Of a stretch of 64,000 bases of DNA, positions 21,543-52,628 are shown one piece after another (position 1 is the stretch's first letter; every line of letters begins with the position of its first letter). This DNA is from Bugula neritina (taxonomy: Eukaryota; Animalia; Bryozoa). The stretch covers positions 496,001-560,000 of the forward strand of contig OZ037766.1 of the NCBI GenBank assembly GCA_964035545.1, read 5' to 3'. A model generated the notes under the pieces. That model searched no databases. It was not told the origin of the DNA and was given only the letters and a program-made list of their open reading frames with translations. The position numbers were made by a program, and so were the translations under genes.

Positions 21543-23795
21543 ATGGCAGATCCTGCACCTGAGTTCGACACAGCTATAGACACCACCACAACTACTACTG
21601 TACCGAATACTGACTGTGCCAACCTCATGTATTACTTGAACAGTAAGTATCACTTCTCAGAACTGAGTTAAATACCGAGTAATGAAATATGTTTATAGAT
21701 TTAATTTTGATTTGGTTAGTCTTACGCAGTGGTGTAGCAATACATACATTACACTATGTAGTTTATTATAAACTTTATCATTAATTTTATCAAATTATAT
21801 GTTAACAATTGACACTGCATTTTACATCTATAGATCTTTTAATTGTTCTAATTGTTTGTACTGTAAAGTTACTTACTATAATACAGGTATATGCACTGTA
21901 ATTGAACTGAAAGATGAACCTAATTTGACACGTCTGAGAGACTATAAGAACTGGAAGTCACTCTCATTGGCTGAGAAGTCAGAGCTAGTGAAACTTTGTG
22001 AGAGATTACATCCAAGTGTATTGAGAGGTAAGTATGATTCTCTAAAAGTAAATTGCATAGACAATTAATTACTCTTTAAATTGAAAACTATTATAAATAT
22101 AATATTTACCAACTTTTTTTAACAGAATTGTTTGAGGTAAAGGTGAAGTGATAACTTTTTAAGTTAACAATACCTATTAATTAATATAATATTTTGATCT
22201 AATAATTACTGACTTCATGAATGTCAAAAACTGTAATTCAGTTTATCGTAAATGTGGAAATTGGAAAGTATGATTTACTAGAGAAAACGCGATAATGAGC
22301 ACACAACTCTTGTGAACTGTGATTAGTTAACTGATGCATATCATATAATACCATTCTTAAAAAGTTGTTTAAAGCAGTTGATAGTCTTGGTATTGTATTA
22401 TGAAGGCTATTTTAATTATCTTGCTGTTAACTTATTGTTTTTTTATTTTAGACCGGCAGCGTGTGTTTTCAGCCCGTAAACCTATAAAGGATTCTACAAA
22501 TAAGTTCTTGACTGTCAGTTCCAAAGAGTTGGGAACCGACATAAAGGTCATGGTTTATGAAGATCAGTGGTTGAAGGAAAACTACCTGGAACCTTTGAAA
22601 AGAATGAGTGAGAAAATATACATCTATTCATTTAATTTTTAATTGTAATATATAATACAGAATGGAAGTTTATAAGACTGTTTGATTTTGAACAAAAAAG
22701 CTCATATAGATTATTTATTTTATAAAATTATTTAGATAATAGCTTGTTGAAAATGGCAAATATATAGGCTAAATATGCAGTTTACTGTACGAAACTATAT
22801 AGTCGTGTTAATATTTTTTAATAAAAAATATATACAGCTATACCATACGTATGACTTTCACAATCTGAAGAACTATATATATATGTATATATATATATAT
22901 ATATATATATATATATATATATATATATATATATATATATATATATAGATATATTATATCTAAATGTATATTTTTATGCTATATATTGTCTATATTTATA
23001 TACATTATATATAATGTAGTTGTTTAAAAATTATAATTCATTTATTCTGTTAATTTCAGAACAAGAAATCAGAGAAGCTGAGTCACCTAATCGTTCAGTT
23101 ATCAACTCAGGACTGGCTGGTAAGTTATGGCCAACTGAAACTGAGAGCTATTTGAAATCCATGAGTCACTATTGAAGTAATTCTGAGCTGTTGAATGCTA
23201 AGCTTTGAACAAAGTTCTTTTCAGCTGCGTTTTAGCAAAATATAGAAGATATTATAATATTATCACTGTGGCTGGCGATAAAAATAATTTTTGTGGAAAT
23301 GAATGACAACATATTGCATCGGATGTGAAAGAAGCATTAACGCAGTGAGTTTGTTATTGAATTAGTTTCCAAACAGCAAAGTTGCTTTTAACAAATTCAA
23401 GAGTTTAAAAAACTATTAGAACAGTTTGCCTGATCACCATTTTGTTGGTTTTACGTCATCAATAGCTGATACTAACTCGCATAACGTTTGTAAGCTGCAC
23501 AGTTATATTCCGTGTAATGCCATATTGTACAAAACAGCAGAAAATAATTAACAATTGTCTAAACCCGTTTTATCATTTTACAGGTTACGCAACAGACGTT
23601 GCGAGTTATGCCGCAACAGGCATTGTGAGGCGTGCCGCAGAACATGAAGATTTGGAATTTGATGGAGAAAATGTTGCAAGAGCTGCAGCAACTGCAGGTG
23701 TAGCAGCTGTAGGTTTACTAGCTGTAGGTGTAGCTGCTCCAATAGCAGCACCTTTTGCAGTGGCAGCTGGTGTATGGAAGTGGATGACCAGATAA
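21543..23795 (+). CDS. Uncharacterised family gene A (222 aa); exons 21543-21642, 21887-22027, 22452-22607, 23060-23119, 23584-23795
   Basis: All-phase-1 GT-AG exons join into [80 protein letters not shown]...[17 protein letters not shown]...[37 protein letters not shown]. Exon lengths 141/156/60 are identical in paralogs B and C. Confidence 0.85.
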
Positions 23796-23935
23796 CGGTA
23801 ATGAACATAGTTTTTATGACATGTACTTTAACTCTCGGGCACACACACGCACACAACACACAACACAAAACACAAAACACACAACACAAAACACACACAC
23901 ACACACACACACACACACACACATTGCATTTATAC

Positions 23936-23986
23936 TGTTTTGCACTGATGAGAGGGCAAATCCTAAAACAGCTGCCATCCACAAAA
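23936..23986 (+). ncRNA. Degenerate (probably inactive) type I hammerhead ribozyme 3' of gene A
   Basis: CTGATGA at 23945-23951 followed by gagggcaaatcctAAAAcagctgc. Aligns to the intact copy at 43330-43376, but the core CGAAA reads TAAAA. Confidence 0.7.
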
Positions 23987-49300: not shown

Positions 49301-52300
49301 TACTTTTAATTTGGCCAAGCCGGGCACAATGGGCCACCTGTTTATTGCACCCTAATCACTGTTATTAGTTTGTTTGTCTAAAAAGTTCATTGAAATGTTA
49401 CTAAAATCTATAGATATAGCCATTTCTAACCTTTTTGTTTTAATATCAAAGCCATCATGGTAAGAGTACAAAACTACAAGTTGAAGCTCCCCTAATATAT
49501 ACATCTGGTGAGGTTATAGCTTTGCCATTTTATACATAATACAAAACACTCTGCTGTTGCTACTAGTGGATAGTCATGATAATCATTATATATTGCACTA
49601 TTGAGGGAATATAGATGTATTTGACTGAAATAAATTGTGATTTGCTCATTTGCTTCCCCCTCTTCCTTACGTACTCCAGTCACAAACCTCAGCCATGCAC
49701 CTTAGCTACAGTTCATAGAAAAAAGACCACTCAAAATTTTGTAGTACATGTTACTAAAGTTTTTTTTTTAATAAACGTTCCTCTGAAGTGAAAATAACAG
49801 AACATTTTTAGTTCTAAACAGCAATGATAATGGCACTGCAGAACCGAGTGACGTGCGTTTGATTTTGCCTTCCTCTGCTATCCGTAGTGGCACAAACTGT
49901 ACAGCTAAAACATGAATTTTGCTGTAGATTTGAAAGAATATTTTTATTTCTTTGTAATCTTAAATAAACAAAGATTAGATGTAAAAAAATACGCAAAATT
50001 TTAATATGTTTGCTGTGTCCCACCCATTGGCTCATGGTACCGAGGTACTGGGGCACAATGGGCCAATTTTTTCGTCATGAAAATTTCATTATTCTGAAAG
50101 TTGTGGGAGAGATAGAAACAACAAACTGATACCTGTAATAGACAACAGATGCAGCATTAAGACTATAGATTATTGAACTAGTAACTTAAAAAACAGACGA
50201 ATGAGAGCAACAAATGCAAAATTCGGCCCCTTGTGCCCCCCCCTCGTTACCCCTACTACAACATATTTGAGTTATTCTCTTAATATTAAAAGGCAAACAT
50301 ACCCAATTATAATGCTTTAAAGATGTGCATTTCAAATTCCATAAATTAGTTACATAATTGTCATTTGATGGATTACAATCTACAAAAATATGCTATAGTA
50401 GGATATCTTATGACACATGGATTCGCTATAATATTTTACAGTATATATATTATTATAATATGTTTTATATAACGTACTTTACAGAAGAGCAGGTTCTATT
50501 TCCTTCGTTTATTACAGGAAAGGAAATCAATGAAACTGAGTCTCCTGAGCCTCCAAGTACAAACTTAAGTCAGTCTGGTAAGTTATGACAAACTAGAAAT
50601 AACCAAGGTTATATGTAAGCTTATAATAATATAGTGCTACAAAGTTGGTTATTTAGTTGTTTTGGTTACTCTTTTGATTAAGAAAAAAATCACTTTTACT
50701 CTTTTAATTACTTAAGTTGTTAGTAGACACAGCAAACAAAGTTTTCTAAAATTGAGTGAAGATATTTATTGAATGCTAATCAAATTTGAGCAAAATATGT
50801 TTTAATTGTGCCAATTAGTTAAATTGGCAAAAGTTCTAATAATCAGGGCAGAGCAATAAGATTTCCTACAATTCATAATCTATTATTACATTAGTTGCAG
50901 GTAATTGCGGCAGGTGGTTGTGGCAGATGGTTGTGGCAGGTGGTTGTAGCAGGTGGTTGTGGCAGGTGGTTGTAGCAGGTGTATGTAGCAGGTGGTTGTA
51001 TCAGGTGGTTGTGGCACCATGTCTTTACACAGAACTTTCAATTTATCAAAACAGTTTTTAGGCACAAAAACATTTTGAAAAACTTCAAGTAGTTATAAAC
51101 TGTAATATTGATATACTCCTATTATAAAAGACCTTTATTGCCGCCATTTGCTCATATGACACAAGCTTATACCAGCTGCTGACAATGACTAACATAACTT
51201 TTGTAAGCACAAAGATGAACTTTGAATACATAATATATTGTTTTAAAACTGTACTCAACAAAGCCAAATAACAAAATCAGAACTTATGTAATTGAATAAC
51301 TACTTTGTCAATATTACCTGAAGTTTACTTGAAGGGAATGTTGCCTGGATGACGCTTGACGATTTTTCTGTTGGTGATGTCGCTGTTGCTGTTGCCAAAA
51401 CTGCTTTTAAAACGACCATTGAAACAGAAAGTGCACTAGTAGCAACTGGTGCGGCAGCTTTTGGAACTGCTGCTACAGCATTTGTAGTACTTGGTTATCC
51501 TGAGAAAGTAATTTGTGAAATAGTCACTTGGATGACATCTACACACAAGGGTACTTAACATATATTTTCATAAATAGTGTCACCCATTAGTGTTAGTATA
51601 TTCTGATATTTTCAGAGAGAGTTGAGTATTCAGAGTGTCAGTCTTCATGCATGGCAGTACCTTGCATAGCTTTTCTTAAATACTGAAGGAAATTAGGCCT
51701 AAACCAGACATAATTGTGTTTATTGTAGAAGAAGAACAAAGGAAAGAGCGAGAAAAAAGAGACCAGCTAGGTAAATATAGCTTATATTCTAGTATCAATT
51801 ATATAAAATGTTTATATGCACTATATTGCTGCCGCAGCTATTCTATATGCGTAATCTCTCCATGGTATCTAAAGGAACAGAAATCAGCTGCTTTATAACT
51901 TCATGGTTGTAGAAAAAGAGAGGCAAGAAAAAGAACAAGAACAGAAACACCTGGAAGGTATGTTTAAGGTTATTAGCAATACTTTCTAACAAGATGAGGT
52001 TTTAAAAACTCAAGGTCTAAAATCAGCAAGTTATAGTTCAACTCACAACCAGTGCAAGTGAATTTTTGGTTATTGAAATTTAACAAAAGTTGTCAACTGA
52101 TTTAAAGTTATTCTTCTTTACTAAATTACTATTCACCTAAAAACAATCAAATTAAAGCAATATGCTTACATGAGCAAAATATACATTATTTTTTCATTAT
52201 ATGTTTGGTAAAAACTGCATATATGCAGTTTTTATATAATAATTATAGACCAGTTTCAAAATTTTCAAAAAGTAATGTGCAAACTACTTTACTCATACTG

Positions 52301-52628
52301 AAGCATAGAATTTAATGCACTTTAAAATTTAACCACAAATGTTTTTCAAAAAAAACCTGTTTAATGATATTACCTATAAAGCAGTTTTCACACCTCAATT
52401 TGGTAATCTCTGATGATATAGATGTATAGCAGTATAAGGAAGATGTTCACTAACTAGAGTTAAGGAGCAATTAATGTATATGGTATTGTTAGAAAATGAA
52501 TCTGCTCATTATTATTATTATTACGCAACATAACTTTAGTTGCTGCAGTTATAATTGCAGAGGAAAGAGAACGCCAAAGGATGGAGGCAGAAAACCGATC
52601 TAGAAGACGAAATAACAAGTGTTTGTGA
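46337..52628 (+). CDS. Uncharacterised family gene C; exons 46337-46439, 46756-46896, 47529-47684, 47848-47907, 50518-50577, 51335-51550, 51729-51770, 51913-51957, 52561-52628
   Basis: MAATTAPLYDTVRDINSPATVPENYSARLMYYLDCICSIVEMEYEPKLRRLRDYENW...; duplicated linker exon; Ala-rich exon ending WMTSTHK; three phase-1 E/K/R/Q-rich exons ending RSRRRNNKCL*. Confidence 0.78.
48841..48945. repeat. Near-perfect 105-bp palindrome
   Basis: ttgagtttacccaacagcccctgtggtgtaattggttatagccgctgcttg|caagcagcggctataaccaccaattacaccacaggagctgctgggtaaactcaa. Confidence 0.92.
48948..50253. mobile_element. Non-autonomous DNA transposon with TA target duplication (Tc1/mariner/pogo class)
   Basis: TA|GGGGTAAG..GGGGGGGCACAA ... 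TTGTGCCCCCCC..GTTACCCC|TA; internal repeats gggcacaatgggcca at ~49322 and ~50051. Confidence 0.8.
50905..51016. repeat. 14-bp-class tandem repeat
   Basis: gcaggtggttgt(g/a) repeated ~8 times. Confidence 0.85.

Follow-up and report, generated by a model that had tools for sequence, protein, structure and literature searches.

Probable membrane-tethered LMYY-domain proteins: a tandem gene cluster of an undescribed family in the bryozoan Bugula neritina

The bryozoan Bugula neritina carries a tandem cluster of genes from a protein family that is very probably real, undescribed and tethered to membranes, and for which we use the working name LMYY-domain proteins. The cluster lies in a window of 64,000 nucleotides (GenBank assembly GCA_964035545.1, contig OZ037766.1, positions 496,001 to 560,000 of the forward strand), whose own numbering is used here, and comprises three co-oriented genes of one common plan, A (21543-23795), B (35834-43121) and C (46337-52628), together with a fragment, D. 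The gene models, the splicing of A-type exons 1 to 3, the existence and spread of the family, its absence from Pfam and the Protein Data Bank (PDB) and the statistics of its C-terminal tails are settled. Taken as a whole, the observations are explained best, in our estimation with a moderate degree of confidence, by an undescribed family present as a tandem cluster, whose N-terminal domain might serve as an adaptor held at a membrane in the cytosol.

The genes were queried exon by exon, by reference, and the models were built by direct reading of the DNA and by tblastn with the gene A exon peptides. The surrounding DNA is AT-rich eukaryotic DNA of about 30% GC. Hydrophobicity of the tails is given as KD19, the Kyte-Doolittle 19-residue maximum. 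The modelled exons are the following:

21543-21642, plus strand: gene A exon 1, with start codon and L-M-Y-Y-L motif; the joint 21642>21887 (GT..AG) occurs in an RNA-type contig
21887-22027, plus strand: gene A exon 2, 141 nt, helical core R-L-R-D-Y ... L-C-E-R-L-H-P; both joints occur in RNA-type contigs
22452-22607, plus strand: gene A exon 3, 156 nt, beta part with I-M-V-Y ... W-L ... N-Y, lacking 14 residues of the family core
23060-23119, plus strand: gene A exon 4, a 60-nt linker, differing from gene B exon 4 at 1 of 57 nt
23584-23795, plus strand: gene A exon 5, Ala/Gly-rich hydrophobic segment (KD19 2.13), end W-K-W-M-T-R, TAA
35834-35930, plus strand: gene B exon 1, from tblastn and DNA reading
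36581-36721, plus strand: gene B exon 2, 141 nt, from tblastn and DNA reading
37793-37948, plus strand: gene B exon 3, 156 nt, from tblastn and alignment
42437-42496, plus strand: gene B exon 4, 60 nt, donor AT in place of GT at 42497-42498
42964-43121, plus strand: gene B exon 5, Ala/Gly-rich hydrophobic segment (KD19 2.06), end W-R-W-M-T-R, TAA
46337-46439, plus strand: gene C exon 1, from tblastn and DNA reading
46756-46896, plus strand: gene C exon 2, 141 nt, from tblastn and DNA reading
47529-47684, plus strand: gene C exon 3, 156 nt, from tblastn and alignment
50518-50577, plus strand: gene C exon 4, a 60-nt linker, from DNA reading
51335-51550, plus strand: gene C exon 5, weaker Ala/Gly hydrophobic segment with W-M-T (KD19 1.87), model only, acceptor with a poor pyrimidine tract
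51729-51770, plus strand: gene C exon 6, Glu/Lys/Arg-rich, model only
51913-51957, plus strand: gene C exon 7, Glu/Lys-rich, model only
52561-52628, plus strand: gene C last exon, basic run and end K-C-L, stop TGA at 52626-52628, model only

Exons 2 and 3 thus measure 141 and 156 nt in each of the three genes, and the likeness of the exons is far above chance (tblastn with the gene A exon-2 peptide gave E values of 1e-22 against B and 1e-20 against C). All modelled introns are in phase 1 and bounded by GT..AG, the donor of gene B exon 4 being the sole exception. Because this exon has 60 nt and is in phase 1-1, the reading frame would stay intact if it were left out, and skipping may be possible. 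A preliminary description of this DNA, made from its letters, had reported a domain shared by A, B, C and D on exons of conserved length, phase-1 introns throughout and the end of gene C at 52628, where the stop codon indeed ends; all of this was reproduced. Details of the genes that had to be corrected are the AT donor in gene B and, in gene A, the C-x-C motif, whose first Cys is replaced by Ser.

Spliced transcripts were met in run X1, which is labelled as metagenomic RNA-Seq ('symbiont metagenome') and which we presume to be RNA. Its contigs were compared with gene A and lie on the exons only, with 85-96% identity to the window. Two of them join 21642 to 21887 and 22025 (+2) to 22450 (+2) with GT..AG borders, just as predicted for introns 1 and 2. 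Contigs reaching 22607 run on into exon-4-like letters, and two more leap most of gene A intron 4. Since the identity is just 85-96%, the contigs stem from a near relative or paralogous genes; A-type exons 1 to 3 are transcribed and spliced as modelled, in A or in close kin. In the same gene, 22744-22827 in intron 3 and 23836-23900 just past the stop codon have a very high contig depth in both runs, in the thousands in the DNA run, which marks short dispersed repeats.

The family extends far beyond this genome. A profile of five exon-2 peptides (46 columns) was searched against 1.84 billion representative proteins and found 97 relatives at E<1e-3, 14 of them at E<1e-10, recovering the helical core R-[LF]-x-D-Y-x-N-[YW] ... 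L-[ST]-x-x-E ... L-C ... P-x-x-L; three further word-index searches added 24, 34 and 111 relatives. Many matches of the profile are complete proteins of 160-260 residues in which approximately residues 36-80 are matched, and the gene of one relative (P0015), situated on a 45-kb contig, has no introns. The relatives have in common a domain of about 145 residues; used as tblastn queries, they lead back to exons 1, 2 and 3 of every locus studied here. In an alignment of 64 relatives (A2), the M, Y and Y of the N-terminal motif are at least 90% conserved. Named relatives belong to the sponge Amphimedon queenslandica, which provides the best-scoring of the named full-length proteins found with the exon-2 profile, the coral Montipora capricornis, the bivalves Ruditapes philippinarum and Saccostrea cucullata, the bdelloid rotifers Adineta, Rotaria and Didymodactylos, the ciliate Tiarina and the parabasalid Tritrichomonas musculus, in which the domain occurs in three tandem copies. 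Hence, relatives in rotifers and microbial eukaryotes, as suggested in the preliminary description, do exist, and the distribution is wider and patchy, with trichomonads, ciliates, sponges, corals, clams and rotifers. Where the relatives are annotated at all, they are always called 'uncharacterized', 'unnamed' or 'hypothetical', and a literature search for motif and architecture found nothing.

The N-terminal domain corresponds to no family in the databases searched. Pfam returned sub-threshold noise only on the exon reading frames of the window (RD3, DUF5865, MtrA), no consistent N-domain family on 10 plus 9 full-length relatives, and no recurrent family among all 64 members of the alignment at E up to 1. 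NCBIfam and PADLOC gave no match to the relatives, and a profile search of the PDB sequences reached a best E of 0.23. Weak matches of Fy-3, DUF6035 and ComC_SSD to one member each were rejected. The same applies to RD3 (PF14473), which matched exon 2 of A and C at E 0.09 and 0.04, with 13-14 bits against a cut-off of 27 bits over about 25 residues, and is regarded as a chance match; in the full-length relatives Pfam found no RD3.

Structure prediction was done for residues 1-152 of a relative (P0027) with AlphaFold2 and the 64-sequence alignment. The model is confident (mean predicted local distance difference test, pLDDT, 87; predicted template modelling score, pTM, 0.84) and describes a compact alpha+beta domain with four to five helices (24-81), five short strands (86-131) and a closing helix (133-145). 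Searched with Foldseek against the PDB, its best match had E 0.2 and a template modelling (TM) score of 0.16; shapes of the ESM Atlas reached TM scores of at most 0.36, and the fold search of the BFVD viral models, by which a viral origin was considered, gave nothing. The fold is apparently new, as far as a predicted model can tell. Several cysteines are conserved in the family (C-x-C, L-C, G-K-C, C-G), for which reason metal binding might be considered; A, B and C lack two of these.

The exon-2 peptide of gene A has five places in the whole 216-Mb assembly, namely A, B, C and two loci outside the window: E, on the minus strand 6.7 kb past the window end, and F, at 29.25 Mb of the same contig and 29 Mb from the cluster. 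With D included, the family has six loci in this genome, five of them within about 72 kb, and the motif V-P-x-x-x-x-A-x-L-M-Y-Y-L-x-C-x-C is found in all six. Exon 3 is complete in E and F. Only these two contain the whole beta part, N-x-F ... S-[IV]-x-[IV]-G-G-x-x-R-x-V-x-x-I-M-x-[YF]-x-x-x-W, which A to D fail to match. A, B and C lack the same 14 core columns and also two flanking family cysteines (alignment A3), and they retain the adjoining motifs N-x-F and I-M-V ... W-L ... N-Y. In the P0027 model the missing residues map to the least confident part, a hairpin (blocks 101-120, pLDDT 69-74), plus one strand, so that the deletion may be tolerated. By alignment, A, B and C are a truncated subtype: the domain of about 130 residues given in the preliminary description holds for them, as a shortened form of the family domain of about 145. 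Locus F is a compact canonical member (approximately 2685-5340 of extract L007, which covers 29250001-29260000), with a complete exon 3 and a CaaX end.

Fragment D was rightly described as having a single transmembrane tail. Its minus-strand orientation, the missing exon 2 and a long terminal repeat (LTR) retrotransposon of 7.9 kb in its intron are added here:

34859-34760, minus strand: fragment D exon 1, 100 nt, the length of gene A exon 1, with an L-M-F-Y-L motif
26115-25942, minus strand: fragment D exon 3, an open frame with a G-K-C-I-F start like that of the wider family and an Arg/Thr run in the middle
25761-25649, minus strand: fragment D last exon, a basic stretch followed by one transmembrane segment 7 residues before the end (KD19 2.02)
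26131-34012, plus strand: Ty3/gypsy-type LTR retrotransposon of 7.9 kb inside the D intron, 15 nt upstream of the D exon-3 acceptor

In its exon 3, D lacks 8 core columns and has the Arg/Thr run there instead, and between exons 1 and 3 no exon 2 is recognisable. Minisatellites with 9-, 14- and 16-nt spacing at 33999-34595 occupy the expected place of this exon and its flanking introns; a Cys/Ile/Ser-coding minisatellite resembling them lies between exon 3 and the later exons of locus E (4013-4756 of extract L006). The LTRs of the retrotransposon (26131-26430 and 33713-34012) are 99% identical, and the element encodes a gag-like open reading frame of 299 residues and another of 1765 residues with protease, reverse transcriptase, RNase H and integrase domains. 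At 52-62% GC, the element has roughly double the value of its neighbourhood (about 30%). Judged from these features, it is apparently young and intact. The loss of exon 2 together with the element in the intron marks D as a dead or crippled copy. As read from the sequence, the cluster consists of a canonical copy, E, a derived triplet, A to C, and a killed copy, D.

The C-terminal tails of the family are diverse. In 175 relatives with a complete domain, the survey gave:

99 of 175: C-x-x-x end (CaaX-like)
36 of 175: hydrophobic segment in the last 40 residues (transmembrane tail anchor)
6 of 175: zf-LITAF-like domain
1 of 175: FYVE finger
remainder of the 175: truncated models or unclear tails

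The last residue of the C-x-x-x ends is L or F in 57 proteins and S, Q, M or C in 31, and among the 54 such proteins that were counted first, 18 contain between one and three additional Cys directly upstream. The zf-LITAF-like domain (PF10601) was recognised by Pfam in P0153 (26.8 bits, cut-off 23.8), and five more relative clusters carry it after the N-domain; the FYVE finger (PF01363) of P0151 scored 46.3 bits against a cut-off of 27.8. Within this genome, locus F ends in S-S-S-C-T-I-L, a CaaX pattern and thus a putative prenylation site. The modelled last exon of locus E matches BRI3 (PF10164; 46.1 bits against a cut-off of 25.9, and 47.6 bits in the whole-genome scan), with a Cys-rich hydrophobic stretch and then a C-x-x-C-G-H knuckle at the C-terminus. 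It is one of just three BRI3-type places in the genome, and the preceding exon supplies a C-x-x-C knuckle. As a zf-LITAF-like domain, this last exon reached 11 bits, below the cut-off of 23.8, and a genome-wide LITAF scan had no match in or near the cluster.

Among A to D no BRI3 domain was met and the CaaX box is absent: A and B end in W-M-T-R, C in K-C-L and D in its transmembrane segment, which near the C-terminus fits the definition of a tail anchor. The tails of A and B contain an Ala/Gly/Val/Pro segment of about 30 residues (KD19 about 2.1) ending 6 residues before the stop. This position is compatible with a tail anchor; however, the segment is Ala/Gly-rich with two central prolines and could be a hairpin. 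Gene C adds the Glu/Lys/Arg-rich exons and a basic, Cys-containing end. The differing C-termini were described correctly before. The Ala/Gly/Pro segment of A to C may be a tail anchor or a monotopic hairpin. Pfam has no family for the tail exons of A and B, and in the whole genome, when searched as a module in other genes, the Ala/Gly tail exon was found in A and B only. The whole 3' block of these two genes, intron included, is 78% identical; judged from this likeness, the tails of A, B and C are diverged copies of each other and not separate captures. Free exon shuffling through phase-1 introns, as formerly proposed, is no more than plausible. By their sequence features, A, B and C form a young, derived and lineage-specific branch with a new Ala/Gly/Pro-rich hydrophobic segment. 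For the family at large, the comparison supports interchangeable membrane tails (Ala/Gly segment, transmembrane segment, BRI3 and CaaX here; LITAF-like and FYVE elsewhere), in agreement with the preliminary description of an uncharacterised, membrane-targeted family.

This architecture suggests how LMYY-domain proteins might work. A member would consist of the N-terminal alpha+beta domain (about 145 residues, about 130 in A to C), a short low-complexity linker and a C-terminal membrane device; the folded domain comes first and the anchor last, and no model contains a signal peptide. The devices are all of kinds that act on the cytosolic side of membranes: CaaX boxes for prenylation, tail anchors with a transmembrane segment, zinc-knuckle hairpins of the LITAF or BRI3 type and FYVE fingers binding phosphatidylinositol 3-phosphate (PI3P). 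From these devices and the lack of a signal peptide we infer that the N-domain resides in the cytosol at the surface of endomembranes. The anchor might supply proximity only, which would explain why anchors can be exchanged freely. FYVE, through PI3P, as well as LITAF and BRI3 are endosomal or lysosomal devices, hence an endolysosomal site is the best guess; CaaX and transmembrane tails have no compartment specificity. No catalytic signature is present in the N-domain, which makes a function in binding or as an adaptor most likely, and an endolysosomal adaptor role, as the tail types would have it, is a possible but rather doubtful assignment.

Several points weigh against the proposal of a membrane-held cytosolic adaptor family. 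Topology, compartment and adaptor role are inferred throughout. The 85-96% identity of the X1 contigs does not establish expression of this exact copy of gene A, and the RNA nature of the run is a guess. In locus E, the N-domain exons and the BRI3 exons are joined by the gene model only. About 60 residues follow the hydrophobic segment in gene C, hence it is no classical tail anchor there. The blank fold search, made with whole-model queries, is no proof of a new fold. Finally, a dN/dS (ratio of nonsynonymous to synonymous substitution rates) of about 0.7, the core deletion and the mutated donor of gene B could signal decay of A, B and C.

The substitution rates were derived from Nei-Gojobori counts over exons 2 and 3 (97 codons), made per exon and then summed. 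In this small sample dN/dS was 0.71 for A-B, 0.70 for A-C and 0.79 for B-C. The dS between the paralogues was 0.08-0.22 in exon 2 and 0.59-0.81 in exon 3; moreover, the intron flanking exon 2 is about 82% identical between the copies, with about 75 nt downstream of the exon unusually alike. The low exon-2 dS and the similar flanking intron suggest local gene conversion around exon 2. The same is suggested for exon 4 of A and B, where 1 of 57 nt differs although the flanks are 78% identical. Relaxed constraint fits a dN/dS of about 0.7 as well as diversifying selection does. The label 'rapidly diversifying' in the preliminary description is therefore weakly supported, given this ratio, the core deletion and one dead copy.

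In an alternative reading, which we regard as unlikely, A, B and C might be non-functional or decaying duplicates of a functional E/F-type ancestor, with frames still open as the copies are young and the exons are in phase 1-1. Such decay would be in line with the dN/dS of 0.70-0.79 over both exons, the AT donor of gene B, the clearly dead neighbour D and an Ala/Gly tail exon that occurs nowhere else in the genome. It would also fit the loss of 14 core residues and two conserved cysteines; however, this deletion is common to all three copies, hence it predates their duplication and was then retained. Furthermore, five to eight exons are open in three copies with splice sites that are canonical but for one, the near-invariant motifs M-Y-Y, N-x-F and M ... 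W ... Y ... P/L are retained, and exon-only, correctly spliced contigs occur in an RNA-type run. The exon-3 dS, which reaches 0.6-0.8 between the copies, would represent time enough for stop codons to arise in dead genes.

A rapidly diversifying family of immune effectors or sensors, as had been proposed before, in which the tails would direct the proteins to various membranes for contact with pathogens, is improbable in our view. Tandem duplication, a raised dN/dS, the turnover of tails and the presence of one pseudogene are reminiscent of many immune families of invertebrates, and the BRI3 and LITAF types of tail belong to proteins that are linked to responses to tumour necrosis factor (TNF) and lipopolysaccharide (LPS). 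However, the genome has just six loci and no large expansion, and the family is also present in ciliates and trichomonads. The proteins have neither a signal peptide nor a TIR, Death, NACHT or lectin domain, and no defence or immune family, PADLOC included, was matched. The 3' ribozyme that had been reported alongside was not recovered either, the Rfam scan of the window giving no ribozyme at the gathering score, the only threshold used. Similarly low is the chance that the family is not new after all and its N-domain belongs, in strongly diverged form, to a helical family already known, e.g. the C-terminal domains of CATCHR (complexes associated with tethering containing helical rods) proteins such as VPS53 and Sec10/15, or a helix-turn-helix-like bundle: protein-language-model features of P0027 lie near the VPS53_C, Sec10, Sec15_C and Syndetin_C clusters of the ESM Atlas (scores 0.82-0.86), yet these scores are below 0.9 with 140 of 256 features common and give a lead only, which was rejected since no other test backed it, no CATCHR chain appearing in the Foldseek or VIA lists, the model being alpha+beta with five strands and not an all-helical rod, and no Pfam family (VPS53_C, Sec10_HB and Sec15_C included) recurring in the 64 members at E up to 1.

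The remainder of the window contains other genes and repeats. Two tandem Kv-type channel paralogues with ion-transport exons lie at 228-5160 on the minus strand, each with a BTB_2 (T1) domain at 75 bits. Exons of a GBF1-like ADP-ribosylation factor guanine nucleotide exchange factor (ARF-GEF) follow at 7361-13290 on the plus strand (Pfam TPR_28 'GBF1-like', 46 bits), and this gene is broken up by Pro/Tyr/Thr-coding minisatellites at about 7.8-8.6 kb. Downstream of gene C, a satellite of 9.7 kb extends over 53317-63060 with a 23-nt unit, about 418 copies and 93% match, a GC content of 19% and a strong G-over-C skew of 0.87. No functional tie of the Kv-type genes, the GBF1-like gene or the satellite to the family is evident.

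If the proposed reading of LMYY-domain proteins holds, a conserved domain exists that no family database contains and whose confident predicted structure matches nothing solved; that the standard model organisms lack it would account for its having escaped notice. The anchor, which almost all members have and which is exchanged freely, offers a testable handle on protein location and membrane side. The cluster displays the evolution of the family in one place, with E as canonical copy, A to C as derived copies and D killed by exon loss and a young retrotransposon. A more far-reaching version is conceivable, although we lean slightly against it: the N-domain might be an ancient eukaryotic module with an unseen fold, active only at the cytosolic face of an (endolysosomal) membrane and re-anchored in at least six ways, by a farnesyl/geranylgeranyl CaaX box, a transmembrane tail, a LITAF hairpin, a BRI3 hairpin, FYVE/PI3P and an Ala/Gly/Pro hairpin. 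The family would then amount to an experiment of nature on the exchange of anchors, and membrane biology would have missed a component in the many aquatic lineages that retained it.

Among known systems, LMYY-domain proteins resemble C-terminally anchored cytosolic proteins of the CaaX and tail-anchored kinds in having a folded N-domain, a flexible linker, a C-terminal anchor and no signal peptide; in Ykt6, for instance, a folded N-domain is combined with a lipid anchor at the C-terminus. Their N-domain has no detectable kinship in sequence or fold with longin, Ras-like or any other anchored families, and A to C are without a CaaX box. The LITAF/CDIP1 type of domain (PF10601) serves as tail in at least six relative clusters, and the BRI3 type (PF10164) in the gene model of locus E, but in LITAF and BRI3 themselves the N-terminal part is short and proline-rich, whereas here it is a conserved folded domain, and A to D lack the hairpin domain. 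With FYVE endosomal proteins (PF01363), P0151 has in common the C-terminal membrane-targeting finger; however, this is a single case, and none of the copies in this genome has FYVE. The long Ala/Gly/Val stretches in the tails of A and B recall those of IFI6/IFI27 (ISG12), a likeness that is compositional only, and Pfam at E up to 10 gave no match of the tail exons to this type of family. Collectively, the LMYY domain is an undescribed domain within a well-known class of architecture, the cytosolic domain with a C-terminal anchor, and it is combined with an unusually rich set of anchors.

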